64,000 nucleotides of DNA from NCBI GenBank assembly GCA_965644295.1, contig CBFFRP010000565.1:35953-99952 (forward strand). The letters run 5' to 3'. This DNA is from Paraphysomonas bandaiensis. Taxonomy: Eukaryota > Protista > Chrysophyceae. The notes under the pieces were generated by a model. That model saw only the letters and a list, made by a program, of their open reading frames with translations, searched no databases and had not been told where the DNA came from. Positions 7,701-64,000 of the stretch are shown here, piece by piece. The position numbers and the translations under genes were made by a program. Positions within the stretch are counted from its first letter, which is position 1; every line of letters starts with the position of its first letter.

Positions 7701-9474
7701 GTATCCGCTCATCGGTATGAGCAACCCTTTATGGGGATTATAGAGCTCTAGAAACTCTTGCCCAACTCATTGGGCTCGGATATTCCTAGATTTTCTATTA
7801 CCACACTCCATCGATTTTTGTCGGGGATCGTATAAACTGGTAAGAGGGGCTTTAGGCCTTAGGTGTAAGGATGGCATGTAGGTACATATATGTAATTTTC
7901 ATTGCGATTGTGGCCCACACTTGGTTTTGTATTCATGCAGCTAACGGTTGGAATGTGATTGTATATACCATGAAATGAGCTTGTGGGCAAGTATAAAATC
8001 AGGGGTTTTAATTTTTGTAAAAACTGTGAATTATTTTAAAAGATATGGACATACAGGTTGGTCGTTTATAAACTGTAAATGCATCAGCTTCAGCTAACGA
8101 GCAAGTTGCGTATACCGTATACTCTAGTATAGGATTTGTGTGACGCGACGTGTATTGGCGTTTTATGATGGCTATTAGTAGTAGTATGTAGATACTGGTA
8201 AAAGGAAACGTGCTGTTGGTGTGTCCTATAGGACCTAAATATTAATAAAAATAATTATTAACACTATACTATTGCATTCAAGCACTTTTAGAACCATTCT
8301 ACAACAACTCTTAAAAGTCTAGTAAAATCTACTAGAATTTCCAAAATTTCTGAAAATTTCCCACGTTTGCATATTGTTTACTTACGGTATACAGGATGCG
8401 AGGCCATTGGAACCAACACCAGTAGCTACTAAAAACTTCAACAATCGGTCGAAACTGGGAAACGCAAGTGAATGTAAATCAATCTTGATGGCACTGCCTA
8501 GAAATGCATCGAACGAGCCAACTGGTAGAGATGTGGTGGATATGGTCATGACTCCAATATTGCCAAATTCAGCACGAAATGATATTTGATATCACCATAA
8601 ATTCAACTCACACTTCTCCAACTTTTGGTTCCAAACAGGGAATCATAACTGAGTTAGAATAGTGCAGCCGCATATACACCCTATAAAGGATGATGTGCTC
8701 GGATTGTTGTAATTTGTTGTGTGGTATTATTGTGTACGATCTCTTTCACACAATGACCTCCTGTTTCGATGTGTAATCCGTAAGTCACCAAGCATAATAA
8801 CATTGATGCACAATTTAAATAATAATACAACTTCTTATTTACTACGTTTAGCTTCACCATGATAGCTTTGAGCTGATTGAATGCGATGAGGACTCTCTAG
8901 GTTGTCATGATACAGATGCCCTACCGCTCTCTGTATATAACGTGCATGGTGATCACATGAAATGTTGTTGCAAAGGTATTGGGTATACAAGGGAAGATTT
9001 TAGCGCTGATGCAGCAATAGAAAGGTTTTACACGGCAGTCAGAGTGCTAATCATTGGGAAGGGTTACACCACAATACGCACGAATGATACTTCCGAGAGG
9101 TGTGAGGCATACTCGCTCCCTTCTGCAGTGACGTGTCAATGGAGTTATACTTACATTCGGGATAAACATTCAAAAATGTACTCGGTAGAATAACCCCTGC
9201 CACAAATGGGAATGGCTGCTCTGTACACTACAGACACTGTACAGACATATTTATTAATTGCCATATTATTATAATTTCCGGGAACTGGGCACATATTAAC
9301 TATTAATGGGCTATTAATGGTTACATGTTACCTGACCAAGGTATATGTATGTAGCAGTTCCGCGGCACCGTATATGCAACAGAATCAATGCTCAGTACGC
9401 CCTTGCTCAAGGTACTTTTTCGATAATATCCACTTTTGACATAATTGGACGGTTTAGCTGAACGTTGTATACAC

Positions 9475-31763: not shown

Positions 31764-33150
31764 TTAAATGTAAGACGCCCCAGCAGGACGACCGACTATA
31801 ACATCTAGCTCCGCAAAGGAATTTCTTTCATCTGCGGTAAGATTACTTGTATCTTCAATACTTTCTTCCGGGTAAAAGTCAAAGTTGGAAGTATCACCAT
31901 CGGCAAGGTACGTCGGGACGTATGGGGGAAGTATTAACATTTGTTCTGCAGCAATCCAGTCGATGCCACTGAAATATGCATTTTTCTTTAATGATTCCAA
32001 GCATGATTTATTTGTACATCCGAGTCGCCGAAAACGTCTGCTATTGAGAAACCCCTTTATTGCTGACTGAGTTGTGGCAGCGATTCCTGATGGAAACTTT
32101 ATGTCCCCACGAAGAATCTTTTTATATACACCAAAAGGGTTCTGGTCGTAAAATGGTGGATACCCAGCAACCATTTCGAAAAGAAGGATACCCATAGCCC
32201 ACCTGCAAAGGATTATAAATGACAACCACTTCTTCGTAACCACATGTACACTTACCAGTCTACTGCCCATCCGTAGCCGTTTCCCTGTATGATCTCAGGA
32301 GCCAGATACTCTGGTGTACCGCATAGAGTGAAAGTTCGATCCCTGACGAGCTTCGCAAACCCAAAATCTACCAGACGAATGTGACCGTATCGATCTATAT
32401 AACGACATTAGTGATTAGTTCAATGTATATGAGTTTAGGTACCTATCATGATATTCTCAGGCTTCAGATCGCGGTAGGCAATCTGTAGTGAGTGCATTTT
32501 GCTCAGCCCCGCGGCCACCTCAACCACATAAAACTTTGCAAGATCGTCGGAAAACTTTTCTTCCTTCCGAAGATGTGAAAACAGCTCTCCACCTTGAACA
32601 TACTCCATCATTAAGTATAAATTATTATCATCCTGAAATAAAGCCTCCCTACGTCAAAATTAAATTCAACGACTGAGGTAGAACAGCAGTTCACTTACAT
32701 TTTAACAATCTGCTGGCATCTCAATCGAGACAAAATTCTAATTTCATTCTTCACATGTTCCAGCTGTAGCAGAAGAATAAGACATACACATCATCATAGC
32801 ATTCATAGGCAGCATTACTTGTTGAAGACGAACAATCTTTGCTTTCTTCATTATCTTCAACGCATGGAAGGTATTGTTCTCGATATTTTTAACTAATCTA
32901 ACTCTTCCAAATGAACCTGTGCCTGTCCACTGCGTTACTCGAATAGTTATCATATTATGCACACGCACCTATAGTCTCCAGCATGTCCAGCTGCTGTAAT
33001 CCGAAACTGGCATCTAACAAGGGCTTGAGTGAGTAGTCAGCCGACTCCTCAATATCAGTCGGGTGAAGTTTATTAGTGCTCCAACTAAATAGCTGCATCC
33101 ACAGTGAGAATAAACGCCCTCACAACATGTTATCATATACTCACAGGCAT
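31764..33150 (-). CDS. cAMP-dependent protein kinase catalytic subunit-like (PKA-C/PRKX-like) kinase
   Basis: Multi-exon: [77 protein letters not shown]; probable first coding exon ATGCCT|gtgagt at 33150. Confidence 0.9.
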
Positions 33151-33554
33151 ACTGTTCGGCTCTATAAGTATTTCTAAATTAGATCTATGGACATGGTGGT
33201 TCGTGAGTTCAGAGTTGTTTCTATCCTATTAGCAGCAGTAAACTGGAACAGCAGTATTGACATGGAACCCTGTCTGCCTGTCTGCTGCATGTCATGTTCA
33301 TGTGCTGCTGTTCATCCCTACGATGTACTGCTGTACCTATGTACATATACACATATACATACATACTGAAATGTAACTGAAATTTTAGAAATTTCTTCAC
33401 CGTCTCTATAATTCCCCATTTTCTGAACTTAATATCCCCACTTTTGAGATTCAATGTTTTTACAGTTACAATTACACCTCCTTTATGTCCAGTCTTAACC
33501 ACCTGACTAACGGCTCACATAGACTGACTACATCAAACCTCATCGTGTGGACAG

Positions 33555-36500
33555 ATGTCAGGGTCAAATGGAGCACACTCAGATGATGAATCGGTTGTAT
33601 TTAACCCGGATGATTTTAATTCAGAGTTAGGGGATGAGGTCACTGCTAAATCAACTATAAATGAGGCTCGTCAGAAGGCACGGGAAGAGGCTAGTAGATT
33701 GATGGGGAATATGAAAGTGGGCACTACTGCTGTTCGTAAATCTGCTGCAAGTGTTAAGTCTAATGCAGTCGATGCCCGCAAGGCAGCTCAGTTGCAAGCA
33801 AACGAGTTGATGGGAAATATGAAAAGTGTAGCTCGCGAAGAGATTACTGCCAATAGTGCGAAAGTATCTGGTCGTATTAGCTCCAACATAACAGATGCAC
33901 GGAGTAAAGTCCGTCAGGAATCTAACAACCTAATGGGTGGTATGAAAGCGACTGGAAATGAAGTGTCTGCAGCGTATGATACGTATACTGCACAGGTCGA
34001 GGATACACAGAGAAAGGCTATCGAGGAAACCAATGACTTGATCCATGTAGCTCGCGAAGAGATTACTGCCAATAGTGCGAAAGTATCTGGTCGTGTTAGC
34101 TCCAACATAACAGATACACGGAGTAAAGTCCGTCAGGAATCTAACAACCTAATGGGTGGTATGAAAGCGACTGGAAATGAAGTGTCTGCAACGTATGATA
34201 CGTATACTGCACAGGTCGAGGATACACGGAGAAAGGTTACCGAGGAAACCAATGACTTGATTCATGTTGGCGACGAATTTATGACTTCTTCAGCCAATTC
34301 TGTAACTGAAATTGCTTCGAAACAAGCTCGGGATGCGAATTCTGTTGCCTCTGAATTCAATTCCAAAGTCAGCAGTGAAATGAGTGGATTGGAACGAAAA
34401 GCTGAAAACTTGCTGACGGATGCATCGACAGCGATTATTGGTAATATGTCTTCTCACCTATCAGACGTGAAGTCTGTCTTCAAAGATACCAAAAAAGTTG
34501 CCCGCCAGGAAATCGATGACGCTAAATCGGACACAGTGAAAGCTTTTAATAATGCTCGAAATGACACGTACTCACATATTGATGAGCTCAAAGGAAAAGC
34601 CTCTCAGGGGCGGGATCGGATAGAAGATGAGTTCAAAGCGTATGCAGGAAGTGAGTTATCACGTGTGACGGCATTTGCTGAGGATTTAACTGGAGAGAAA
34701 GTGTCGAAGCTATCGAAGAAAGATCTAAAGAAAGTTGCTCTTTCCACTCTCAAAACGGAGCTATCTAGTCTGGCTTCAGTTGCGAAATCTGCCATTATGC
34801 CGTCAGGATTTAATTACAGACAGTTGGACACTGAAGAAGAGCTATCGGCCGTTGAATTAGCTCGGTTAGATAAGAATAAATCTAGACTTCGAGAAGGTCG
34901 CTTCAAAGTTGGTGTTGATACATTCGAGAGCTGTCCATATGTATTTGTGCCTTCGTCTTATCTACAAAGCCCTACTTTTAACCTTGCAGATATATTCGAC
35001 ACGATTGATATCCCACTGCCTTCGATTTTATTTCGATTCTTTCAGACCGATGACCCAGTTAACTGGAATGTGAAACTACCACAAAGCCAACTGGGTTTGC
35101 AAGATATTGCGAAAGTGCAAACCAACAATCCGAAAAATAAAAAGATTTTTGGTCCATTATCTCACTACCAGAAAGTTCTCAAGGAAAATTGCCGTCGAAT
35201 GTTGTCAGCTGTGGCAGAGTCTTGCACTGAAGCCGGGGCTGCGTTTCGTATCAACGAGTCATGGTCTAGCGACGCTCCCATAGACGCAGTAGCGTCTTGG
35301 GTGTCAAACAACAACCGCTCTCGCGTGAACATTCTTGGGATTGCTTCGTCTAACGACTATCACCCTGATATATGGAAACAATTAGATGCCGGAGCTTCTG
35401 CCGATTTCGACGAGCTTGCTGAAGGAGGAAATGCAGATATTTCAGAAGTATTGATTGATCCCCAGCCTTTCTATGATGGCACCATTAAAGTTACAAGACA
35501 TCCAACTACGCAGCGTGTTGTTGGTTCTTTTCCGCATCCTAATTTAACACACCTAATTATTTCTGATAATCGGCCACTTTTAGAGCAGAAAATAGCTGAG
35601 GCGTTGCCATGGGGATTGATGTATGTGTATATATAGTGTCACCCAAAAAATGTTCATGTCAATTACAGAATGATTAATGGCTCACGCGCGGCTGCAGATT
35701 TGTTTGTGGAAGCAATACAGGACGGACTTCCAGTCATTGCATTTAAATATACAGGTTACACCGCTGACATAGCCTGCGAAATGTTGGAAAGGGCCGAGAA
35801 GTATCTGGATGAAAAGTCGTATAACTCTTCCACTAAGCCAGAGAGGCCATTTCGAAACGATATGCCCGTAGGATATAAGCCACCGAACTGGCTCCGCCCT
35901 TTTGATGAGTCATATATTTCTGACTGCGAAAAGGCTAACATATTGATTGACAATCTTCCTGATCGATTTGACTCTGGACAATTCTTTATTGTCGACATGT
36001 TCAGCACAACCGATGATGAACTGCAAGACAGGTTGACACAGACAATGGCGGTGGCTTTTGAAGGAGACAAAGAGCTAGGAGGATCTGCAGCCGAACATAA
36101 GAGGCTTACTTATGCGTGGCGAACTCGGCACTTGATGATATACAATGCGATGATATTTAAGCGATATTCAGATGTACTTCATGCACTAATGATTACTTTC
36201 ACTATGCTATCCACGTTTTCAGCTGTATTACACACTTATGCTGAGACTACTCCTGAGCTCTTTGGTTCATATCAAGATTTTGCATTGGGTATTTTACTTA
36301 AAGGCAACTTGCTACTCCCACTGATTACAACTGTTATACGTGGTGTTATATCGATTCTTAACCCGCAGATGAAGTATATATCACTCATAGGCGCTGCCAT
36401 ATTCATCGAGTCTGAGATATATTGCTATCGAGCCAAGGTTGGCAAGTACAATCCACGGCTTGTAGCAGCTCAAGGAGAGGGAGAGGTTAGCGCACGTGGG

Positions 36501-37441
36501 AATAACGTTGACGCCAGAGTAATTTTCTCATCCATACTGGATGCTATTTGGCAAGACCTTTCCGCCTCTGATGTACAGAACACTTCTTTGAAAACCCCAA
36601 GTGCAGAATCTGCTGTTGATGACGTAAATCAGAAGCTCCGGCAAAATCGACAAGAGCAAGAATTATTCACGACAGTTCTAGAGCAGTATGCACCACGAAA
36701 AGAAAGGAAAAAAGAAAGAGCAAAACATATCGACACAGGTGCACTTAAAAAAACTCTTGATTCTGGTGCAACATCATTGAGGAGGATGTCAACATTAAGT
36801 GGTGACATTGCCCCTCCACTACCTACACGAGTTGCAAGTGTTGTGCCAGAAGAAACCTCTGATTTTCCTGTCACACGCTCCTCGATATTAAGAGATGATG
36901 GGCTCAAGGCTCTTTCTGCTGATGAGTACGTTAACCTTCGTTTAATTCCAGAGCTTGCCTCATTGACCGGCAAAGCCTCCACACTAGCCTCGTCGACGTA
37001 CTTCGTTACAATAAGTGTGATTGTTCTATCAGTGTCTGCCTCTGCTCTTTCTACATTTGGGTACTCTTTATTTATCCCTGCTGTATTGAGTCTGTCTGGT
37101 GCTATTACAGCGTGGGGGTCTTATATGCAAACTGATCTCAGGTTGGTTAAAGTCAACGGCGCTCTTGCACAATTGAACCAGGTAATTTTGTGTGGTGCTA
37201 TGTAATTCATCTGCTAATAATTTTGCCGCAGTTAATAATTTGGTGGGACGGGCTTACCATGATAGAAAAACGTGTTCCCTCCAACAAAGAAATATTGATT
37301 CGAACTTGTGAAGCTGCTATTCAAGCACAAGCTGCTCCTGTAGGGGCGAAAAGTAATTCCGGGAATACCAAACAAGGAACTGAAGGTACTGATGGTGATG
37401 GTGAGAGTCAGGGTGATAAGGCAATGAAAACTAGAATGTAA
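33555..37441 (+). CDS. Membrane protein: helical repeat N-terminus + TRPM/LSDAT-type SLOG domain + two SLATT (DUF4231/SLATT_1-like) 2-TM domains
   Basis: Three exons (introns 35621-35668 and 37182-37231) give about 1260 aa. SLOG motifs VNILGIA, PHPNLTHLIISD, IMINGS, LPVIAFKYTGYTADIA. SLATT-A: AW..2TM..AAIFIESEIYCYRAKVGKY. SLATT-B: DDGLKALSADEYVNLRL..2TM..LIIWWDGLTMIEK..LIRTCEAAI. Confidence 0.78.
33828..34265 (+). repeat. In-frame 219-bp (73-aa) tandem duplication inside the SLOG-SLATT gene
   Basis: gtagctcgcgaagagattactgcc starts at both 33828 and 34047; the copies differ at only a few positions. Confidence 0.95.
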
Positions 37442-38077
37442 TGTTTATTGATAAAAAGTACGTTGGATGATTTGTGTTCACATTTTACATATTCGTTAGA
37501 TGATGTACTTGTGGATACGATGACCGAATTTTTTTTGCATAATATTAGTTATTTACTGTATATTTTAAGAGTATTCCATAAGATTTGTGTTAGTAAGTCC
37601 AATTGTAATGAATTGCTCAACCATGACTCCCTCGTCTATAAATTACATTGTGCAATGTTTCTATATGCCTTTATATCGCACGTCTCATTGTTGGTTGTAA
37701 TTGATTCAACTCGACGAAACATAACGCAACATATCAAATAGTATCGTGACCAGTGACCAGGATCCCTAAAATTAATCTTTTCTAATCTTGGATTTTAGGA
37801 GCGAACATAAAAGTGTCACAACAGTCGAATAGATTTCATTCATGGTCGGCTAGTACTGCATTCTAGCTATCGTATTAGTGCTTTATTACTTGATATTATT
37901 TATGTCATTTAAATCGAATACAGTTACAAATTATCGACAATTCTATGTGTATAAGTGTGTTGAGTTCTGCTATTTGAGAGCAATTGAAAGCTGTAGTTCA
38001 AAGGTATTTGACGTATGACTGTTAATGGAAGTATACAGAAGTGGCTAACTATATTATGGGAATTAGTATCATGATAG

Positions 38078-39320
38078 CAGGGCCAGTCAACAATATATTG
38101 CAATATATTGCAAGCAAAAATAAAAAATAATAATAATAATGATACTTTCAAGACCAATAATAATTATTAAATACATTGCAATAATATTGCAATGTATTGA
38201 TATATAGTGGGCGCTAAGAAGAAGAAATGAGCTCGATCGGTAGAAACTAGGTATTAGTAGAGGTTACAACATTTCTAGTACTCTAAGTGTTCAACTCTTT
38301 GTCACTGTCGTCCTCATTCTTATGATCGGACAGTCCATCATCGATGACATGTTGCACTGTCTTTGCGGTCCATAAGTGCTTGTTGAATCGAAGGAACAGC
38401 AGAAGTTCGAGGCGTCGTGGGGTCATTCCTTGTCGCAAGTGTGTCATGATAATCTTCGCTCCGCTGAACAAACGTTCCACAACGTTTGTTGTACTATATA
38501 TCTAAATATTATGTGCTTGTTGGTCGAACGGTATAGGGTATCAAGCTGCCGTCGTAACTTCTTGCTGGCTCTATGGCTTTTAAAAGCAGCAGCAGCGTTT
38601 CTTACATTTGTCACTTCGACAGTCCTATCCAGTGAATCAGCTTTTTCTGCATTCATTCAAAATCTCGCAACTGCTGCTCTCTCTTGACGAGTCAGAAATT
38701 CCTCGTATCCATTCTGAATCTTCACAATACAATTTTCGAAGGTAGGGTTTTGAATAATATCAGCATCTACGGAGAGGTGGGAAGCTGTGGCAGAGATGGA
38801 GAATCAACCCACTGAACTATAATTTCAAAGAAATAAGAAAAAACAGTTTCTTCGCCTGTTCACATGCATATAGATATGACGGCCGAATAGTTTGGTGTTA
38901 TAGTTTGGGCAGATATGGCGATCACTTTACTGGCACTTGCTTATTGACTGTTTAGACTGGCATATTCTATTACAGGTTATAAGAAAAGCATATTTGTATG
39001 GGGATGAAAGCATCTATTTAAGCAGTTTGGAGTTTACTATATGGTGAATAGCTTGACAGAGACAGACAGTACAATTTGTAATATTGAACACGAATAATTT
39101 TCTTCGTTGCAGCTAGTTATCATAATTGTTCGATGTTGTTACAGTGGACGAGTTGTTATAGGATTATGAAGAGTCGTTTATGATTAATCAAGTATATTTT
39201 CTATGACACACTGGCATGAGCAATATATATCAATATATTTCGAGGCCAAATTTGCTAAAATAACAATCAATATATTGTAGCAAGCAAAACTAAATAATTG
39301 CAGTATCTATATTGCAATCC
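38078..39320 (-). mobile_element. Decayed hAT transposon of a second subfamily, with a frameshifted transposase C-terminus
   Basis: TIR-like cagggccagtcaacaatatattgcaat at 38078; minus-strand remnants LSVDADIIQNPTFENCIVKIQNG..ERAAVARF and VERLFSGAKIIMTHLRQGMTPRRLELLLFLRFNKHLW; caatatatt repeats near 39220-39320. Confidence 0.75.
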
Positions 39321-49598: not shown

Positions 49599-52500
49599 TC
49601 ACAGCATTGCAGTTTTTTGCTCAATGACTACAACTCTATTAATCAAATCTTGCACAAGCTTCTTCAATAACGCATTCTCCTCAGTTAATTTGGATATCAA
49701 AACCTCCATCTCCTCAAAAGAAACAGAATTCATAGACAACAATCGCCTAGATATTTGCTGATGATCACCAGTATAATATACATCTCCAATAACTGTCAAA
49801 CCACCAGTAATATGCAAACCACTTCCACTAATGGAAACACCACCAGAAACCTTCAAACCACCCGTCATTACAGTAGAACCACCAGTTACAGTGAAACCAT
49901 CAGTGAAAACACTAGAACCGCCAGTTACTGTCAATCCAGAATCTAATACGGATGAACCACCAGTAACCTTCAAACCACCCGTCATTACAGTAGAACCACC
50001 AGTAACTGTGAAACCATCAGTGAACACACTAGAACCACCAGTTACTGTCAATCCAGAATCTAATACGGATGAACCACCAGTAACCTTCAAACCACCCGTC
50101 ATTACAGTAGAACCACCAGTTACAGTGAAACCATCAGTGAAAACACTAGAACCGCCAGTTACTGTCAATCCAGCATCTAATACGGATGAACCACCAGTAA
50201 CCTTCAAACCACCCGTCATTACAGTAGAACCGCCAGTTACTGTCAATCCAGCATCTAATACGGATGAACCACCAGTAACCTTCAAACCACCGGTCATTAC
50301 AGTAGAGCCACCAGTAACTGTGAAACCATCAGTGAAAACACTAGAACCGCCAGTTACTGTCAATCCAGAATCTAATACGGATGAACCACCAGTAACCTTC
50401 AAACCACCGGTCATTACAGTAGAACCACCAGTTACAGTGAAACCATCAGTGAAAACACTAGAACCGCCAGTTACTGTCAATCCAGCATCTAATACGGATG
50501 AACCACCAGTAACCTTCAAACCACCGGTCATTACAGTAGAACCACCAGTAACTGTGAAACCATCAGTGAAAACACTAGAACCACCAGTTACTGTCAATCC
50601 AGAATCTAATACGGATGAACCACCAGTAACCTTCAAACCACCGGTCATTACAGTAGAACCACCAGTTACAGTGAAACCATCAGTGAAAACACTAGAACCA
50701 CCAGTTACTGTCAATCCAGCATCTAATACGGATGAACCACCAGTAACCTTCAAACCACCCGTCATTACAGTAGAACCGCCAGTTACTGTCAATCCAGAAT
50801 CTAATACGGATGAACCACCAGTAACCTTCAAACCACCGGTCATTACAGTAGAACCACCAGTTACAGTGAAACCATCAGTGAAAACACTAGAACCACCAGT
50901 TACTGTCAATCCAGAATCTAATACGGATGAACCACCAGTAACCTTCAAACCACCGGTCATTACAGTAGAACCACCAGTTACAGTGAAACCATCAGTGAAA
51001 ACACTAGAACCGCCAGTTACTGTCAATCCAGCATCTAATACGGATGAACCACCAGTAACCTTCAAACCACCCGTCATTACAGTAGAACCGCCAGTTACTG
51101 TCAATCCAGCATCTAATACGGATGAACCACCAGTAACCTTCAAACCACCGGTCATAACAGTAGAACCACCAGTTACAGTGAAACCATCAGTGAAAACACT
51201 AGAACCGCCAGTTACTGTCAATCCAGAATCTAATACGGATGAACCACCAGTAACCTTCAAACCACCGGTCATTACAGTAGAACCACCAGTTACAGTGAAA
51301 CCATCAGTGAAAACACTAGAACCGCCAGTTACTGTCAATCCAGAATCTAATACGGATGAACCACCAGTAACCTTCAAACCACCGGTCATAACAGTAGAAC
51401 CACCAGTTACAGTGAAACCATCAGTGAAAACACTAGAACCGCCAGCTACTGTCAACCCAGAATCTAATACGGATGAACCACCAGTAACCTTCAAACCACC
51501 GGTCATTACAGTAGAACCACCAGTTACAGTGAAACCATCAGTGAAAACACTAGAACCGCCAGTTACTGTCAATCCAGCATCTAATACGGATGAACCACCA
51601 GTAACCTTCAAACCACCCGTCATTACAGTAGAACCACCAGTTACTGTCAATCCAGCATCTAATACGGATGAACCACCAGTAACCTTCAAACCACCGGTCA
51701 TAACAGTAGAACCACCAGTTACAGTGAAACCATCAGTGAAAACACTAGAACCGCCAGTTACTGTCAATCCAGAATCTAATACGGATGAACCACCAGTAAC
51801 CTTCAAACCACCCGTCATTACAGTAGAACCGCCAGTTACTGTCAATCCAGCATCTAATACGGATGAACCACCAGTAACCTTCAAACCACCGGTCATAACA
51901 GTAGAACCACCAGTTACAGTGAAACCATCAGTGAAAACACTAGAACCACCAGTTACTGTCAATCCAGAATCTAATACGGATGAACCACCAGTAACCTTCA
52001 AACCACCCGTCATTACAGTAGAGCCACCAGTTACAGTGAAACCATCAGTGAAAACACTAGAACCACCAGTAACAGTAAAACCAGCATCTAATACGGATGA
52101 ACCACCAGTAACCTTCAAACCACCCGTCATTACAGTAGAACCACCAGTAACTGTGAAACCATCAGTGAAAACACTAGAACCGCCAGTTACTGTCAATCCA
52201 GAATCTAATACGGATGAACCACCAGTAACCTTCAAACCACCGGTCATTACAGTAGAACCACCAGTTACAGTGAAACCATCAGTGAAAACACTAGAACCGC
52301 CAGTTACTGTCAATCCAGCATCTAATACGGATGAACCACCAGTAACCTTCAAACCACCCGTCATTACAGTAGAGCCACCAGTTACTGTCAATCCAGCATC
52401 TAATACGGATGAACCACCAGTAACCTTCAAACCACCGGTCATCACAGTAGAACCACCAGTTACAGTGAAACCATCAGTGAAAACACTAGAACCACCAGTT

Positions 52501-55500
52501 ACTGTCAATCCAGAATCTAATACGGATGAACCACCAGTAACCTTCAAACCACCCGTCATTACAGTAGAGCCACCAGTTACAGTGAAACCATCAGTGAAAA
52601 CACTAGAACCACCAGTAACAGTAAAACCAGCATCTAATACGGATGAACCACCAGTAACCTTCAAACCACCGGTCATTACAGTAGAACCGCCAGTTACTGT
52701 CAATCCAGCATCTAATACGGATGAACCACCAGTAACCTTCAAACCACCCGTCATTACAGTAGAGCCACCAGTTACTGTCAATCCAGCATCTAATACGGAT
52801 GAACCACCAGTAACCTTCAAACCACCGGTCATAACAGTAGAACCACCAGTTACAGTGAAACCATCAGTGAAAACACTAGAACCGCCAGTTACTGTCAATC
52901 CAGCATCTAATACGGATGAACCACCAGTAACCTTCAAACCACCCGTCATTACAGTAGAACCGCCAGTTACTGTCAATCCAGCATCTAATACGGATGAACC
53001 ACCAGTAACCTTCAAACCACCCGTCATTACAGTAGAACCGCCAGTTACTGTCAATCCAGCATCTAATACGGATGAACCACCAGTAACCTTCAAACCACCC
53101 GTCATTACAGTAGAGCCACCAGTTACAGTGAAACCATCAGTGAAAACACTAGAACCACCAGTAACAGTAAAACCAGCATCTAATACGGATGAACCACCAG
53201 TAACCTTCAAACCACCCGTCATTACAGTAGAACCACCAGTTACTGTCAATCCAGAATCTAATACGGATGAACCACCAGTAACCTTCAAACCACCCGTCAT
53301 TACAGTAGAACCACCAGTTACAGTGAAACCATCAGTGAAAACACTAGAACCGCCAGTTACTGTCAATCCAGCATCTAATACGGATGAACCACCAGTAACC
53401 TTCAAACCACCCGTCATTACAGTAGAGCCACCAGTTACAGTGAAACCATCAGTGAAAACACTAGAACCACCAGTTACTGTCAATCCAGCATCTAATACGG
53501 ATGAACCACCAGTAACCTTCAAACCACCCGTCATTACAGTAGAGCCACCAGTAACTGTGAAACCATCAGTGAAAACACTAGAACCGCCAGTTACTGTCAA
53601 TCCAGCATCTAATACGGATGAACCACCAGTAACCTTCAAACCACCCGTCATTACAGTAGAGCCACCAGTAACTGTGAAACCATCAGTGAAAACACTAGAA
53701 CCGCCAGTTACTGTCAATCCAGCATCTAATACGGATGAACCACCAGTAACCTTCAAACCACCCGTCATTACAGTAGAACCACCAGTTACAGTGAAACCAT
53801 CAGTGAAAACACTAGAACCACCAGTTACTGTCAATCCAGCATCTAATACGGATGAACCACCAGTAACCTTCAAACCACCCGTCATTACAGTAGAACCACC
53901 AGTTACTGTCAATCCAGCATCTAATACGGATGAACCACCAGTAACCTTCAAACCACCCGTCATTACAGTAGAACCACCAGTTACAGTGAAACCATCAGTG
54001 AAAACACTAGAACCGCCAGTTACTGTCAATCCAGCATCTAATACGGATGAACCACCAGTAACCTTCAAACCACCCGTCATTACAGTAGAACCACCAGTTA
54101 CTGTCAATCCAGCATCTAATACGGATGAACCACCAGTAACCTTCAAACCACCCGTCATTACAGTAGAGCCACCAGTAACTGTGAAACCATCAGTGAATAC
54201 ACTAGAACCGCCAGTTACTGTCAATCCAGCATCTAATACGGATGAACCACCAGTAACCTTCAAACCACCCGTCATTACAGTAGAACCACCAGTTACTGTC
54301 AATCCAGAATCTAATACGGATGAACCACCAGTAACCTTCAAACCACCCGTCATTACAGTAGAACCACCAGTAACTGTGAAACCATCAGTGAAAACACTAG
54401 AACCGCCAGTTACTGTCAATCCAGCATCTAATACGGATGAACCACCAGTAACCTTCAAACCACCGGTCATTACAGTAGAGCCACCAGTAACTGTGAAACC
54501 ATCAGTGAAAACACTAGAACCGCCAGTTACTGTCAATCCAGTATCTAATACGGATGAACCACCAGTAACCTTCAAACCACCCGTCATTACAGTAGAACCA
54601 CCAGTAACTGTGAAACCATCAGTGAAAACACTAGAACCGCCAGTTACTGTCAATCCAGCATCTAATACGGATGAACCACCAGTAACCTTCAAACCACCCG
54701 TCATTACAGTAGAACCACCAGTTACTGTCAATCCAGCATCTAATACGGATGAACCACCAGTAACCTTCAAACCACCCGTCATTACAGTAGAGCCACCAGT
54801 AACTGTGAAACCATCAGTGAATACACTAGAACCGCCAGTTACTGTCAATCCAGCATCTAATACGGATGAACCACCAGTAACCTTCAAACCACCCGTCATT
54901 ACAGTAGAACCACCAGTTACTGTCAATCCAGCATCTAATACGGATGAACCACCAGTAACCTTCAAACCACCCGTCATTACAGTAGAACCACCAGTAACTG
55001 TGAAACCATCAGTGAAAACACTAGAACCGCCAGTTACTGTCAATCCAGCATCTAATACGGATGAACCACCAGTAACCTTCAAACCACCGGTCATTACAGT
55101 AGAGCCACCAGTAACTGTGAAACCATCAGTGAAAACACTAGAACCGCCAGTTACTGTCAATCCAGTATCTAATACGGATGAACCACCAGTAACCTTCAAA
55201 CCACCCGTCATTACAGTAGAACCACCAGTTACAGTGAAACCATCAGTGAAAACACTAGAACCGCCAGTTACTGTCAATCCAGCATCTAATACGGATGAAC
55301 CACCAGTAACCTTCAAACCACCCGTCATTACAGTAGAACCACCAGTTACTGTCAATCCAGCATCTAATACGGATGAACCACCAGTAACCTTCAAACCACC
55401 CGTCATTACAGTAGAACCACCAGTAACTGTGAAACCATCAGTGAAAACACTAGAACCGCCAGTTACTGTCAATCCAGCATCTAATACGGATGAACCACCA

Positions 55501-58500
55501 GTAACCTTCACACCACCGGTCATTACAGTAGAGCCACCAGTAACTGTGAAACCATCAGTGAAAACACTAGAACCGCCAGTTACTGTCAATCCAGCATCTA
55601 ATACGGATGAACCACCAGTAACCTTCAAACCACCCGTCATTACAGTAGAGCCACCAGTAACTGTGAAACCATCATTGAAAACACTAGAACCGCCAGTTAC
55701 TGTCAATCCAGCATCTAATACGGATGAACCACCAGTAACCTTCAAACCACCCGTCATTACAGTAGAACCACCAGTTACTGTCAATCCAGCATCTAATACG
55801 GATGAACCACCAGTAACCTTCAAACCACCCGTCATTACAGTAGAGCCACCAGTAACTGTGAAACCATCAGTGAATACACTAGAACCGCCAGTTACTGTCA
55901 ATCCAGCATCTAATACGGATGAACCACCAGTAACCTTCAAACCACCCGTCATTACAGTAGAACCACCAGTTACTGTCAATCCAGCATCTAATACGGATGA
56001 ACCACCAGTAACCTTCAAACCACCCGTCATTACAGTAGAACCACCAGTAACTGTGAAACCATCAGTGAAACAACTAGAACCGCCAGTTACTGTCAATCCA
56101 GCATCTAATACGGATGAACCACCAGTAACCTTCAAACCACCGGTCATTACAGTAGAGCCACCAGTAACTGTGAAACCATCAGTGAAAACACTAGAACCGC
56201 CAGTTACTGTCAATCCAGTATCTAATACGGATGAACCACCAGTAACCTTCAAACCACCCGTCATTACAGTAGAACCACCAGTTACAGTGAAACCATCAGT
56301 GAAAACACTAGAACCGCCAGTTACTGTCAATCCAGCATCTAATACGGATGAACCACCAGTAACCTTCAAACCACCCGTCATTACAGTAGAACCACCAGTT
56401 ACTGTCAATCCAGCATCTAATACGGATGAACCACCAGTAACCTTCAAACCACCGGTCATTACAGTAGAACCACCAGTAACTGTGAAACCATCAGTGAAAA
56501 CACTAGAACCGCCAGTTACTGTCAATCCAGCATCTAATACGGATGAACCACCAGTAACCTTCAAACCACCGGTCATTACAGTAGAGCCACCAGTTACAGT
56601 GAAACCATCAGTGAAAACACTAGAACCGCCAGTTACTGTCAATCCAGTATCTAATACGGATGAACCACCAATAACCTTCAAACCACCCGTCATTACAGTA
56701 GAACCACCAGTAACTGTGAAACCATCAGTGAAAACACTAGAACCGCCAGTTACTGTCAATCCAGCATCTAATACGGATGAACCACCAGTAACCTTCAAAC
56801 CACCCGTCATTACAGTAGAACCACCAGTTACTGTCAATCCAGCATCTAATACGGATGAACCACCAGTAACCTTCAAACCACCCGTCATTACAGTAGAGCC
56901 ACCAGTAACTGTGAAACCATCAGTGACAACACTAGAACCGCCAGTTACTGTCAATCCAGCATCTAATACGGATGAACCACCAGTAACCTTCAAACCACCC
57001 GTCATTACAGTAGAACCACCAGTTACTGTCAATCCAGCATCTAATACGGATGAACCACCAGTAACCTTCAAACCACCGGTCATTACAGTAGAACCACCAG
57101 TAACTGTGAAACCATCAGTGAAAACACTAGAACCGCCAGTTACTGTCAATCCAGCATCTAATACGGATGAACCACCAGTAACCTTCAAACCACCGGTCAT
57201 TACAGTAGAGCCACCAGTTACAGTGAAACCATCAGTGAAAACACTAGAACCGCCAGTTACTGTCAATCCAGTATCTAATACGGATGAACCACCAGTAACC
57301 TTCAAACCACCCGTCATTACAGTAGAACCACCAGTAACTGTGAAACCATCAGTGAAAACACTAGAACCGCCAGTTACTGTCAATCCAGCATCTAATACGG
57401 ATGAACCACCAGTAACCTTCAAACCACCCGTCATTACAGTAGAACCACCAGTTACAGTGAAACCATCAGTGAAAACACTAGTACCGCCAGTTACTGTCAA
57501 TCCAGAATCTAATACGGATGAACCACCAGTAACCTTCAAACCACCGGTCATTACAGTAGAGCCACCAGTTACAGTGAAACCATCGGTGAAAACACTAGAA
57601 CCGCCAGTTACTGTCAATCCAGAATCTAATACGGATGAACCACCAGTAACCTTCAAACCACCCGTCATTACAGTAGAACCACCAGTTACAGTGAAACCAT
57701 CAGTGAAAACACTAGAACCGCCAGTTACTGTCAATCCAGCATCTAATACGGATGAACCACCAGTAACCTTCAAACCACCCATCATTACAGTAGAACCACC
57801 AGTTACTGTCAATCCAGCATCTAATACGGATGAACCACCAGTAACCTTCAAACCACCGGTCATTACAGTAGAACCACCAGTTACAGTGAAACCATCAGTG
57901 AAAACACTAGAACCGCCAGTTACTGTCAATCCAGCATCTAATACGGATGAACCACCAGTAACCTTCAAACCACCCGTCATTACAGTAGAGCCACCAGTTA
58001 CTGTCAATCCAGCATCTAACACAGATGAACCACCAGTAACCTTCAAACCACCCGTCATTACAGTAGAACCACCAGTTACAGTGAAACCATCAGTGAAAAC
58101 ACTAGAACCGCCAGTTACTGTCAATCCAGCATCTAATACGGATGAACCACCAGTAACCTTCAAACCACCGGTCATTACAGTAGAACCACCAGTTACAGTG
58201 AAACCATCAGTGAAAACACTAGAACCGCCAGTTACTGTCAATCCAGCATCTAATACGGATGAACCACCAGTAACCTTCAAACCACCCGTCATTACAGTAG
58301 AGCCACCAGTTACTGTCAATCCAGCATCTAATACGGATGAACCACCAGTAACCTTCAAACCACCGGTCATTACAGTAGAACCACCAGTTACAGTGAAACC
58401 ATCAGTGAAAACACTAGAACCGCCAGTTACTGTCAATCCAGCATCTAATACGGATGAACCACCAGTAACCTTCAAACCACCCGTCATTACAGTAGAGCCA

Positions 58501-61500
58501 CCAGTTACTGTCAATCCAGCATCTAACACAGATGAACCACCAGTAACCTTCAAACCACCCGTCATTACAGTAGAACCACCAGTTACAGTGAAACCATCAG
58601 TGAAAACACTAGAACCGCCAGTTACTGTCAATCCAGCATCTAATACGGATGAACCACCAGTAACCTTCAAACCACCGGTCATTACAGTAGAACCACCAGT
58701 TACAGTGAAACCGTCAGTGAAAACACTAGAACCACCAGTTACTGTCAATCCAGCATCTAATACGGATGAACCACCAGTAACCTTCAAACCACCCGTCATT
58801 ACAGTAGAACCGCCAGTTACTGTCAATCCAGCATCTAATACGGATGAACCACCAGTAACCTTCAAACCACCGGTCATTACAGTAGAACCACCAGTTACAG
58901 TGAAACCGTCAGTGAAAACACTAGAACCACCAGTTACTGTCAATCCAGCATCTAATACGGATGAACCACCAGTAACCTTCAAACCACCCGTCATTACAGT
59001 AGAACCACCAGTTACTGTCAATCCAGAATCTAACACAGATGAACCACCAGTAACCTTCAAACCACCCGTCATTACAGTAGAGCCACCAGTTACAGTGAAA
59101 CCATCAGTGAAAACACTAGAACCGCCAGTTACTGTCAATCCAGCATCTAATACGGATGAACCACCAGTAACCTTCAAACCACCCATCATTACAGTAGAAC
59201 CACCAGTTACAGTGAAACCATCAGTGAAAACACTAGAACCGCCAGTTACTGTCAATCCAGCATCTAATACGGATGAACCACCAGTAACCTTCAAACCACC
59301 GGTCATTACAGTAGAACCACCAGTTACAGTGAAACCATCAGTGAAAACACTAGAACCGCCAGTTACTGTCAATCCAGCATCTAATACGGATGAACCACCA
59401 GTAACCTTCAAACCACCCGTCATTACAGTAGAACCACCAGTTACTGTCAATCCAGAATCTAACACAGATGAACCACCAGTAACCTTCAAACCACCCGTCA
59501 TTACAGTAGAGCCACCAGTTACAGTGAAACCATCAGTGAAAACACTAGAACCGCCAGTTACTGTCAATCCAGCATCTAATACGGATGAACCACCAGTAAC
59601 CTTCAAACCACCCATCATTACAGTAGAACCACCAGTTACAGTGAAACCATCAGTGAAAACACTAGAACCGCCAGTTACTGTCAATCCAGCATCTAATACG
59701 GATGAACCACCAGTAACCTTCAAACCACCCATCATTACAGTAGAACCACCAGTTACAGTGAAACCATCAGTGAAAACACTAGAACCGCCAGTTACTGTCA
59801 ATCCAGCATCTAATACGGATGAACCACCAGTAACCTTCAAACCACCCGTCATTACAGTAGAACCACCAGTTACTGTCAATCCAGAATCTAACACAGATGA
59901 ACCACCAGTAACCTTCAAACCACCCGTCATTACAGTAGAGCCACCAGTTACAGTGAAACCATCAGTGAAAACACTAGAACCGCCAGTTACTGTCAATCCA
60001 GCATCTAATACGGATGAACCACCAGTAACCTTCAAACCACCCATCATTACAGTAGAACCACCAGTTACAGTGAAACCATCAGTGAAAACACTAGAACCGC
60101 CAGTTACTGTCAATCCAGCATCTAATACGGATGAACCACCAGTAACCTTCAAACCACCGGTCATTACAGTAGAACCACCAGTTACAGTGAAACCGTCAGT
60201 GAAAACACTAGAACCACCAGTTACTGTCAATCCAGCATCTAATACGGATGAACCACCAGTAACCTTCAAACCACCCGTCATTACAGTAGAACCGCCAGTT
60301 ACTGTCAATCCAGCATCTAATACGGATGAACCACCAGTAACCTTCAAACCACCGGTCATTACAGTAGAACCACCAGTTACAGTGAAACCGTCAGTGAAAA
60401 CACTAGAACCACCAGTTACTGTCAATCCAGCATCTAATACGGATGAACCACCAGTAACCTTCAAACCACCCGTCATTACAGTAGAACCACCAGTTACTGT
60501 CAATCCAGAATCTAACACAGATGAACCACCAGTAACCTTCAAACCACCCGTCATTACAGTAGAGCCACCAGTTACAGTGAAACCATCAGTGAAAACACTA
60601 GAACCGCCAGTTACTGTCAATCCAGCATCTAATACGGATGAACCACCAGTAACCTTCAAACCACCCATCATTACAGTAGAACCACCAGTTACAGTGAAAC
60701 CATCAGTGAAAACACTAGAACCGCCAGTTACTGTCAATCCAGCATCTAATACGGATGAACCACCAGTAACCTTCAAACCACCGGTCATTACAGTAGAACC
60801 ACCAGTTACAGTGAAACCATCAGTGAAAACACTAGAACCGCCAGTTACTGTCAATCCAGCATCTAATACGGATGAACCACCAGTAACCTTCAAACCACCC
60901 GTCATTACAGTAGAACCACCAGTTACAGTGAAACCATCGGTGAAAACACTAGAACCGCCAGTTACTGTCAATCCAGCATCTAATACGGATGAACCACCAG
61001 TAACCTTCAAACCACCGGTCATTACAGTAGAACCACCAGTTACAGTGAAACCATCAGTGAAAACACTAGAACCACCAGTAACTGTGAAACCATCATCTAA
61101 TACGGATGAACCACCAGTAACCTTCAAACCACCCATCATTACAGTAGAACCACCAGTTACAGTGAAACCATCAGTGAAAACACTAGAACCGCCAGTTACT
61201 GTCAATCCAGCATCCAATACGGATGAACCACCAGTTACAGTGAAACCATCAGTGAAAACACTAGAACCGCCAGTTACTGTCAATCCAGCATCTAACACAG
61301 ATGAACCACCAGTAACCTTCAAACCACCGGTCATTACAGTAGAACCACCAGTTACAGTGAAACCATCAGTGAAAACACTAGAACCGCCAGTTACTGTCAA
61401 TCCAGCATCTAATACGGATGAACCACCAGTAACCTTCAAACCACCCGTCATTACAGTAGAACCACCAGTAACTGTGAAACCATCATCTAATACGGATGAA

Positions 61501-64000
61501 CCACCAGTAACCTTCAAACCACCGGTCATTACAGTAGAACCACCAGTTACAGTGAAACCATCAGTGAAAACACTAGAACCGCCAGTTACTGTCAATCCAG
61601 CATCTAATACGGATGAACCACCAGTAACCTTCAAACCACCCGTCATTACAGTAGAACCACCAGTTACAGTGAAACCATCAGTGAAAACACTAGAACCGCC
61701 AGTTACTGTCAATCCAGCATCTAATACGGATGAACCACCAGTAACCTTCAAACCACCCGTCATTACAGTAGAGCCACCAGTTACAGTGAAACCATCAGTG
61801 AAAACACTAGGAACCGCCAGTTACTGTCAATCCAGCATCTAATACGGATGAACCACCAGTAACCTTCAAACCACCGGTCATTACAGTAGAACCACCAGTT
61901 ACAGTGAAACCATCAGTGAAAACACTAGAACCGCCAGTTACTGTCAATCCAGCATCTAATACGGATGAACCACCAGTAACCTTCAAACCACCCGTCATTA
62001 CAGTAGAACCACCAGTTACTGTCAATCCAGCATCCAATACGGATGAACCACCAGTAACCTTCAAACCACCCGTCATTACAGTAGAACCACCAGTAACTGT
62101 GAAACCATCATCTAATACGGATGAACCACCAGTAACCTTCAAACCACCGGTCATTACAGTAGAGCCACCAGTTACAGTGAAACCATCAGTGAAAACACTA
62201 GAACCGCCAGTTACTGTCAATCCAGCATCTAATACGGATGAACCACCAGTAACCTTCAAACCACCCGTCATTACAGTAGAACCACCAGTAACTGTGAAAC
62301 CATCAGTGAAAACACTAGAACCGCCAGTTACTGTCAATCCAGCATCTAATACGGATGAACCACCAGTAACCTTCAAACCACCGGTCATTACAGTAGAACC
62401 ACCAGTTACAGTGAAACCATCATCTAATACGGATGAACCACCAGTAACCTTCAAACCACCCGTCATTACAGAAGAACCACCAGTTACAGTGAAACCATCA
62501 GTGAAAACACTAGAACCGCCAGTTACTGTCAATCCAGCATCTAATACGGATGAACCACCAGTAACCTTCAAACCACCGGTCATTACAGTAGAACCACCAG
62601 TTACAGTGAAACCATCAGTGAAAACACTAGAACCGCCAGTTACTGTCAATCCAGCATCTAATACGGATGAACCACCAGTAACCTTCAAACCACCGGTCAT
62701 TACAGTAGAACCACCAGTTACAGTGAAACCATCAGTGAAAACACTAGAACCGCCAGTTACTGTCAATCCAGCATCTAATACGGATGAACCACCAGTAACC
62801 TTCAAACCACCCGTCATTACAGTAGAACCACCAGTAACTGTGAAACCATCATCTAATACGGATGAACCACCAGTAACCTTCAAACCACCGGTCATTACAG
62901 TAGAACCACCAGTTACAGTGAAACCATCAGTGAAAACACTAGAACCGCCAGTTACTGTCAATCCAGCATCTAATACGGATGAACCACCAGTAACCTTCAA
63001 ACCACCGGTCATTACAGTAGAACCACCAGTTACAGTGAAACCATCAGTGAAAACACTAGAACCGCCAGTTACTGTCAATCCAGCATCTAATACGGATGAA
63101 CCACCAGTAACCTTCAAACCACCGGTCATTACAGTAGAACCACCAGTTACAGTGAAACCATCAGTGAAAACACTAGAACCGCCAGTTACTGTCAATCCAG
63201 CATCTAATACGGATGAACCACCGGTAACCTTCAAACCACCCGTCATTACAGTAGAACCACCAGTAACTGCGAAACCATCATCTAATGCGGATGAACCACC
63301 AGTGACCTGCCAAACCACCGGTCATTACAGTAGAACCACCAGTTACGAGTGAAACCATCGAGTGAAAACGCTAGAACCGCCAGTTACTGTCAATCCAGCA
63401 TCTAATGCGGATGAGCCACCGGTTAACCTTCAAACCGCCGGTCATTACAGTAGAACCACCAGTTACAGTGAAACCATCAGTGAAAACACTAGAACCGCCA
63501 GTTACTGTCAATCCAGCATCTAATACGGATGAACCACCAGTAACCTTCAAACCACCCGTCATTACAGTAGAACCACCAGTAACTGTGAAACCATCATCTA
63601 ATAGCGGATGAACCACCAGTAACCTTCAAACCACCGGTCATTACAGTAGAACCACCAGTTACAGTGAAACCATCAGTGAAAACACTAGAACCACCAGTAA
63701 CTGTGAAACCATCATCTAATACGGATGAACCACCAGTAACCTTCAAACCACCCGTCATTACAGTAGAACCACCAGTTACAGTGAAACCATCAGTGAAAAC
63801 ACTAGAACCGCCAGTTACTGTCAATCCAGCATCTAATACGGATGAACCACCAGTAACCTTCAAACCACCAGTCATTACAGTAGAACCACCAGTTACAGTG
63901 AAACCATCAGTGAAAACACTAGAACCGCCAGTTACAGTGAAACCAGCATCTAATACGGATGAACCACCAGTAACCTTCAAACCACCCGTCATTACAGTAG
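49599..64000 (-). CDS. Giant (>4,700 aa, N-terminus outside the window) G/T/V/S-rich 13-aa-repeat protein, predicted beta-helical fibre with a C-terminal coiled coil
   Basis: 4054-aa open frame 49599-61763 continues upstream past a few single-base indels (61810, 63300-63430, 63603). Units MTGGLKVTGGSSV / LDAGLTVTGGSSV / FTDGFTVTGGSTV. Unique C-terminus ...YYTGDHQQISRRLL...LTEENALLKKLVQDLINRVVVIEQK, then a stop. Confidence 0.85.
49840..64000. repeat. Coding minisatellite: 39-bp basic unit arranged in 117-bp and 78-bp higher-order repeats
   Basis: A continuous array of near-identical units over about 14.1 kb, running to the window end. Confidence 0.98.

Follow-up and report, generated by a model that had tools for sequence, protein, structure and literature searches.

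SLATT proteins kill cells as effectors of cyclic-oligonucleotide-based antiphage signaling systems (CBASS) and of Thoeris type VII, and are thought to do so by oligomerising and breaching the membrane; the type VII effector ThsH is activated by cyclic ADP-ribose, and DRT10 has a SLATT partner (bioRxiv 10.64898/2025.12.03.692087; PMC13276650). The SLOG domains of Thoeris type I bind signals derived from ADP-ribose (ADPR), and the MHR1/2 region of TRPM2 binds ADPR. Burroughs et al. (NAR 2015, as cited in PMC13143021) defined the LSDAT and SLATT families and connected the SLOG domains of bacteria with TRPM channels. The gene described here lies on the plus strand at 33555-37441 of a 64,000-nt stretch of the Paraphysomonas bandaiensis genome (the window; contig 565, positions 35953-99952), and encodes a protein with an LSDAT-type SLOG domain followed by two modules of two transmembrane (TM) helices each, both of SLATT type. 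Pfam and the 2015 literature both contain this combination, which is also found in eukaryotic database clusters; the gene is a well-documented addition to a known, uncharacterised kind of protein and not a new kind of system. A search of the available literature returned no description or test of any eukaryotic LSDAT-SLATT protein. By analogy with the systems above, we judge the odds slightly better than even that the protein, with an amphipathic N-terminus, a SLOG domain and four membrane helices in two SLATT hairpins, is a ligand-gated pore acting in a stress or infection signal or in cell death.

The bacterial LSDAT_prok-DUF4231-SLATT_1 proteins (PF18171, PF14015 and PF18181) have their modules in the same order as the window protein. 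ESM Atlas clusters of this three-part design, about 606-640 aa long and from Actinomycetota and Chloroflexota, contain all three Pfam families and match both structure models discussed below, which bears out the statement of a first-pass annotation of this DNA that SLOG+SLATT+SLATT fusions occur in bacteria. The predicted mechanism, a ligand-sensing SLOG domain controlling 2-TM modules, would be shared with the bacterial proteins; however the window protein is about twice their length, is nuclear with spliceosomal introns, carries an N-terminal repeat domain of 430 aa and has a linker of about 150 aa between its TM modules. Its SLOG region covers about 400 aa against about 240 aa in stand-alone bacterial LSDAT clusters, and its sequence has diverged from the bacterial proteins such that its own exon pieces fall below Pfam thresholds.

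The 2-TM effectors of CBASS, ThsH of Thoeris type VII and the SLATT partner of DRT10 belong to the same effector module family, SLATT, as the window protein; the mode proposed for bacterial SLATT effectors, in which a ligand leads to oligomerisation and then to membrane breach, may be common to both (bioRxiv 10.64898/2025.12.03.692087; PMC13276650). In bacterial SLATT defence the signal maker is encoded in the same operon and mostly a single SLATT module is present, whereas in the window protein the sensor is fused in cis to two modules, and no partner enzyme was found. SLATT_1 also occurs in other marine algae, as in EMIHUDRAFT_256646 of Gephyrocapsa huxleyi and in MMETSP transcripts; the Atlas clusters nearest to the window protein by features and shape are about 920-1080 aa long and mostly haptophyte. 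A haptophyte SLATT gene shifts its expression during virus infection (bioRxiv 10.64898/2026.09.30.755861).

The gene model consists of three open reading frames (ORFs) on the plus strand (33555-35636, 35670-37205 and 37190-37441), which are joined by two GT..AG introns into a stop-free coding sequence of 3789 nt for a protein of 1262 aa.

33555-35620, plus strand: exon 1, aa 1-688 and two bases of codon 689, with ATG at 33555; from the ORF and a GTATGT donor at 35621
35621-35668, plus strand: intron 1, 48 nt, GTATGT..CAG; cuts the SLOG domain within the IMINGS motif; skipped in RNA contigs of runs X1, X4 and X5, kept in DNA of run X18
35669-37181, plus strand: exon 2, aa 689-1193; from the ORF, splice signals and RNA joints
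37182-37231, plus strand: intron 2, 50 nt, GTAATT..CAG; cuts the SLATT_1 module ahead of its last helix; skipped in RNA contigs of X1 and X4, kept in X18
37232-37441, plus strand: exon 3, aa 1194-1262, with a TAA stop at 37439-37441

Splicing was examined by aligning contigs of public sequencing runs to 33400-37600. A 3339-nt RNA contig from run X1, which is of the same organism, covers 34198-37600 with exactly the 48-nt and 50-nt introns missing, and RNA contigs from X4 and X5, a polyA marine metatranscriptome, contain one spliced joint each; a single contig from the DNA-type run X18 crosses the same stretch with both introns present. The joints 35620/35669 and 37181/37232 are therefore those of a spliceosomal gene, being seen in RNA while the introns are seen in DNA; the second was returned by the alignment as 37178/37229 with the cut shifted by +3, which is 37181/37232. 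An X1 RNA contig begins at 33504, and there is no ATG upstream. Two A>G differences from the window, at 34191 and 37423, are present in both X1 (RNA-type) and X18 (DNA-type), and so are strain polymorphisms and not RNA editing.

The first-pass annotation had joined the three exons into a single protein of about 1260 aa and had held that its introns speak against bacterial contamination; it also named in advance a finding of unspliced ORFs in RNA as fatal to this model, and what the RNA contigs contain is both introns removed. All of the strings that it quoted are found in the spliced translation: VNILGIA (aa 591-597), HPNLTHLII (661-669), IMINGS (689-694, across splice junction 1), PVIAFKYTGYTADIA (710-724), IESEIYCYRAKVGKY (936-950), LSADEYVNLRL (1104-1114), and WWDGLTMIEK...LIRTCEAAI (1197-1224), just past junction 2. 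An artefact, whether from contaminating bacterial DNA, from a pseudogene or from incorrectly joined exons, is next to impossible; it is already refuted by the introns, which are out of the RNA and kept in the DNA, and is further opposed by a frame open across 1262 codons, an adjoining protein kinase gene that is itself split by introns, and a paralog on a separate contig. The gene is thus nuclear, intact and expressed in a marine alga of the stramenopiles, with transcript contigs in both cultures and polyA ocean metatranscriptomes.

The own genome, searched as 62.5 Mb in 669 contigs, contains one paralog (contig C19), which is 47% identical over aa 430-1238 and has introns at the same two codon positions, its intron 1 being longer. 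Genome-wide profile searches returned these two paralogs only, with no further locus for the SLOG profile or for a TRPM-like SLOG domain; Pfam-family searches of the genome for LSDAT_euk and SLATT_1 were blank, yet they were silent in controls too. Outside the genome, exon 2 alone was used as a phmmer query against 1.84 billion cluster representatives, of which 465 matched at E <= 1e-3 and 41 at E <= 1e-30; the match to P0001 (E = 2e-122), together with the 465 representatives, excludes a chance match. A word-index homologue search with exon 1 residues 430-688 gave no match though relatives clearly exist, presumably because of a limit of the index.

P0001, the nearest database relative, is a contiguous ORF of 1029 aa on a metagenome contig and is 44% identical over aa 430-1250; it is intronless, with PWGLIMVNGS and LNQLLVWWDG running uninterrupted over both junction sites. 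The contig of P0001 (L004; P0001 ORF at 3001-6090, plus strand) carries, at a distance of about 1.7 kb, another ORF of 424 aa (7802-9076, minus strand), the C-terminus of which is SLATT_1-like (E = 1.5e-4), and the family is thus locally duplicated there. For P0143, P0150 and P0117 the genomic context consists of short contigs only, or is not available.

Pfam was run on 38 long relatives, in which the domain order is constant: LSDAT, DUF4231, SLATT_1. SLATT_1 and DUF4231 were each found in 17/38 (best 3.6e-14 and 3.2e-9, respectively), LSDAT_prok in 7/38 (best 2.8e-17, 63 bits) and LSDAT_euk in 5/38 (best 1.7e-10), such that scores for the SLOG region are split between the two LSDAT families. 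The clearest case is P0115, in which LSDAT_prok covers 64-154, DUF4231 273-378 and SLATT_1 487-604; two segments of the spliced window protein align directly with P0115, namely aa 674-1001 (93-416 of P0115, E = 8e-21) and aa 1094-1258 (472-636, E = 3.7e-16). The gene for P0115 (669 aa) extends over about 20 kb (L005, 140-20028) in the NCBI eukaryotic assembly GCA_001247695.2, and the same architecture is therefore also present in an intron-rich eukaryote.

The SLOG domain occupies the following stretch.

34872-36107, plus strand: LSDAT-type SLOG domain, cytosolic and like TRPM MHR1/2, aa about 440-835, broken by intron 1

Alignment A2 of the SLOG region, with both window pieces among its sequences, was used as a profile against all PDB sequences and gave 59 matches, namely 58 TRPM channels and the LOG-like 1rcu, and nothing else; the best scores are to TRPM5 (1.2e-8) and the TRPM2 chanzyme (1.5e-7), followed by TRPM8, 7, 4, 1 and 3. 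Structure models were built on P0001, since it is contiguous and 44% identical, as a proxy for the window protein. The AlphaFold2 (AF2) model of P0001:190-612 is confident, with a predicted local distance difference test score (pLDDT) of 90.3 and a predicted template-modelling score (pTM) of 0.87, and displays the Rossmann-like SLOG fold; in a Foldseek search of the PDB, 50/50 of its best matches are TRPM channels (E 2e-10 to 3e-7). Against the ESM Atlas the same model matches TRPM clusters with a template-modelling score of 0.59 by query and stand-alone bacterial LSDAT_prok clusters with 0.74 by target, as well as bacterial DUF4231-LSDAT_prok-SLATT_1 proteins and, more weakly, LOG enzymes; about 315 residues are aligned with TRPM and about 240 with bacterial LSDAT, a difference that partly reflects target length.

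The window protein has the Gly-rich loop of the fold as I-N-G-S (G693) and its T/S-G-G-x-A-D motif as F-K-Y-T-G-Y-T-A-D (T717, G718), in which Y replaces the second G; P0001 shows the same variant. The SLOG residues conserved in the family, H666, G693, T717-G718 and D798, are all present, and in the model the SLOG motifs of the first-pass annotation are predicted to sit on or beside core strands. The assignment of the domain to the TRPM/LSDAT type in that annotation agrees with the Pfam matches of the relatives, the A2 profile and the P0001 model alike. The N-terminal MHR1/2 of TRPM channels (TRPM2, TRPM5, TRPM3, TRPM7 and TRPM8) is the same domain as the window SLOG; the window protein has no six-helix TRP channel domain, TRP box or coiled coil, and no MHR3/4 ankyrin-like region is seen. 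Two SLATT hairpins make up the membrane part where TRPM has its channel domain. Identity as a TRPM ion channel was considered and rejected: the protein has no more than four hydrophobic helices, arranged as two hairpins, no ion-channel family of Pfam matches, and no solved channel matches the TM model.

The membrane half follows the SLOG domain directly, and hydropathy places its four helices in two pairs, at about 858-878 and 893-921, and about 1126-1150 and 1152-1170.

36102-36452, plus strand: first 2-TM module, DUF4231-like, aa about 834-950, with TM helices at about 858-878 and 893-921 and then the IESEIYCYRAKVGKY helix; from hydropathy, the P0115 alignment and model helices
36453-36899, plus strand: cytosolic linker, part helical and part disordered, aa about 951-1099; low pLDDT at model residues 212-263 and variable in alignment A3
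36900-37327, plus strand: second 2-TM module, SLATT_1, aa about 1100-1225, with TM helices at about 1126-1150 and 1152-1170; broken by intron 2

Pfam did not match DUF4231 to the first TM module of the window in its exon pieces, and the last 80 residues of exon 2 gave DUF4231 an E of 0.96; in the relatives DUF4231 is found at the equivalent position (best in P0115, 37.6 bits against a cut-off of 24.7), and it is to this region of P0115 that the window protein aligns. The first module is called SLATT on account of the DUF4231 matches and of the placement of DUF4231 (PF14015) within the Pfam SLATT clan. For SLATT_1, with a cut-off of 26.3 bits, the relatives score 26.5 (P0151), 30.1 (P0008), 32.9 (P0096), 41.2 (P0081) and 53.3 (P0115); P0151, an MMETSP transcript that is above the cut-off, is 43% identical to the window protein. 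Significant SLOG and SLATT profile matches, the lack of which the first-pass annotation would have counted against itself, are found in the Pfam scans of the relatives, though the exon pieces of the window stay below cut-off.

In the AF2 model of P0001:600-1012 (pLDDT 84.3) each module consists, in order, of a long helix continuous with TM1, of TM2 and of a conserved helix on the cytosolic side, and a helical, then disordered, linker connects the two; the helix/TM/TM/helix arrangement, two TM helices with flanking cytosolic helices as in SLATT_1, is modelled at pLDDT above 90. In the ESM Atlas this model matches eukaryotic, mainly haptophyte, SLATT_1/DUF4231 clusters with template-modelling scores of 0.70-0.72, and a bacterial DUF4231/SLATT_1 cluster of 266 aa with a score of 0.83 (root-mean-square deviation 2.6 Å over 250 residues), both modules being spanned. 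Language-model features of exon 2 indicate the same families. With the Pfam matches of relatives and the P0115 alignment, the match to the bacterial cluster supports the earlier call of two 2-TM SLATT-type modules after SLOG. As there is no signal peptide and the loops within each pair are short, the N-terminal domain, SLOG, linker and tail should all be on the cytosolic side.

The most conserved positions of the family lie in or beside the TM helices (P906, P921, E938, R943, Y949, Y1109, R1113, P1159, N1185, W1197-W1198 and E1220), and all those of the TM half are retained in the window protein. This conservation bears on a quite improbable alternative, namely that the protein is a membrane-anchored SLOG enzyme with LOG-like nucleotide hydrolysis, or a scaffold that recruits partners, the four helices being an anchor only and forming no pore. 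The SLOG superfamily does include LOG phosphoribohydrolases, the model weakly matches LOG-type clusters, and 1rcu is among the matches of the A2 profile; however TRPM MHR1/2, which is non-enzymatic, and the LSDAT families match far better, and it is the TM modules and their flanking helices that are most conserved, more so than helices serving purely as an anchor should be.

The first-pass annotation overlooked the N-terminal third, an amphipathic repeat domain of 430 aa; the SLOG-SLATT-SLATT order that it gave for the remainder holds indirectly, by way of homologues, sequence profiles and modelled structures.

33555-34844, plus strand: N-terminal domain of about 430 aa, amphipathic-helix repeats resembling apolipoprotein/LEA; not in the paralog
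33827-34267, plus strand: tandem repeat within this domain, two copies, 96% identical, with a unit of 219 nt (73 aa); from Tandem Repeats Finder and the protein copies

Pfam matches Apolipoprotein to this domain with E = 4.5e-10 and 40 bits, under the cut-off of 90. Its hydrophobic periodicity peaks at 3.65 residues, where the power is 216 and that of the next-highest peak 37; this is the 11/3 pattern known from amphipathic helices of apolipoprotein, LEA, perilipin and synuclein type; the composition includes 2 Pro, no Cys and no Trp. A contig from one polyA ocean metatranscriptome is without exactly one 219-nt unit (33826->34046). This skip was rejected as an intron on account of its TG..CA ends and 49 shared letters, and is either a copy-number difference in the sea or an assembly collapse. 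In the paralog about 35 aa precede the core, and the N-terminus of P0001 is Ser-rich and unrelated; the domain was likewise not found among the relatives examined, and its absence from the paralog and P0001 indicates a lineage-specific addition. It is the new feature of an otherwise known architecture.

It is hypothesized that the SLOG domain binds a small nucleotide-derived ligand, for which TRPM2 and Thoeris suggest, by analogy, a molecule of the ADP-ribose family as the likeliest candidate, and that the bound ligand would alter how the SLATT hairpins pack or oligomerise; the altered hairpins would then let ions cross the membrane. This would result in a stress or infection signal or, at full activation, in cell death. 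The amphipathic N-terminal domain probably contributes autoinhibition or binding to membranes or lipid surfaces.

Several points weigh against this reading. To our knowledge, no ligand, conductance, localisation or phenotype has been established for any LSDAT-SLATT protein. The separate exon-1 and exon-2 pieces gave no LSDAT match in Pfam at E <= 1, and SLATT_1 matched the exon-2 piece with 12.1 bits (E = 0.21) at profile positions 1-79 only; the pieces are below cut-off because intron 1 cuts SLOG and intron 2 cuts SLATT_1. Foldseek found nothing in the PDB for the TM-half model at E <= 0.001, and an hhalign comparison of TM module 1 with module 2 was not significant (probability 9%). No gene-neighbourhood tie to a signal-making enzyme was seen, as expected in a eukaryote, and the Pfam-family search of the genome for ADP-ribosyl cyclase gave no match, but was silent in controls too.

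A non-lethal physiological channel or regulator is a somewhat unlikely alternative; its SLOG domain would sense a metabolic nucleotide (ADPR, NAD or ATP; compare TRPM2 and TRPM4) for routine Ca2+ or other ion signalling under osmotic, oxidative or light stress, and not for immunity or death. Transcript contigs in unchallenged cultures and in polyA ocean metatranscriptomes would fit such a role, as would two old paralogs (47% identity) that have kept their intron positions and conserved residues, a sign of stable long-term function and not of arms-race turnover; the N-terminal domain resembles LEA and apolipoprotein, which are linked to membrane and stress physiology, and TRPM channels, the closest match to the fold, act as physiological sensors. 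Against this, all SLATT proteins studied to date are defence effectors, and the Pfam SLATT families were defined from conflict systems. The steady expression and the old, conserved paralogs incline us somewhat toward a regulated, non-suicidal role, while the SLATT pedigree and a genome rich in TIR proteins speak for defence.

With respect to signal makers for a ligand-gated pore, the genome search for TIR enzymes suggested by the first-pass annotation found TIR_2 in 13 ORFs, with scores exceeding the Pfam cut-off in 11 (for example at C280:32850-33173, C111:17249-17572 and C25:44814-45227), with many of the domains within ORFs of 600-880 aa. The TIR proteins may be makers of ADPR-type signals; nothing ties the TIR genes to the SLOG-SLATT gene. 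A broader proposal, which we consider unlikely as a whole, is that the alga runs a Thoeris-like pathway, in which infection or damage would lead one of its many enzyme-type TIR proteins to produce a signal derived from ADP-ribose, which would open the SLOG-SLATT protein, and that the eukaryotic family, whose SLOG matches the full TRPM MHR1/2 beyond the minimal bacterial core, would be the stock from which the TRPM sensor head came.

The gene is a clean, expressed eukaryotic LSDAT-SLATT example with a confident structural model (via P0001), one paralog and a TIR-rich genome, and offers a handle on whether SLATT hairpins conduct ions, on the ligands of LSDAT domains, and on whether phytoplankton use bacterial-style nucleotide signalling in virus defence or stress; it also bears on which natural ligands most TRPM MHR1/2 domains have and on where MHR1/2 originated. 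Exon-by-exon Pfam scans miss the LSDAT-SLATT family.

Directly upstream of the gene, at 31764-33098 on the minus strand, is an intron-split Ser/Thr protein-kinase gene that is AGC/PKA-like by motifs, with one exon matching Pfam Pkinase (E = 3e-16). The minus-strand ORF at 38283-38480 was considered as hAT-transposase-like, for which Pfam gave no support. Further along the window, about 14 kb (49599-64000) has a constant GC skew of about -0.34 and AT skew of about +0.32 at a GC content of 0.44-0.45; an extreme strand composition of this kind would suit a single giant coding region, repetitive and read from the minus strand.

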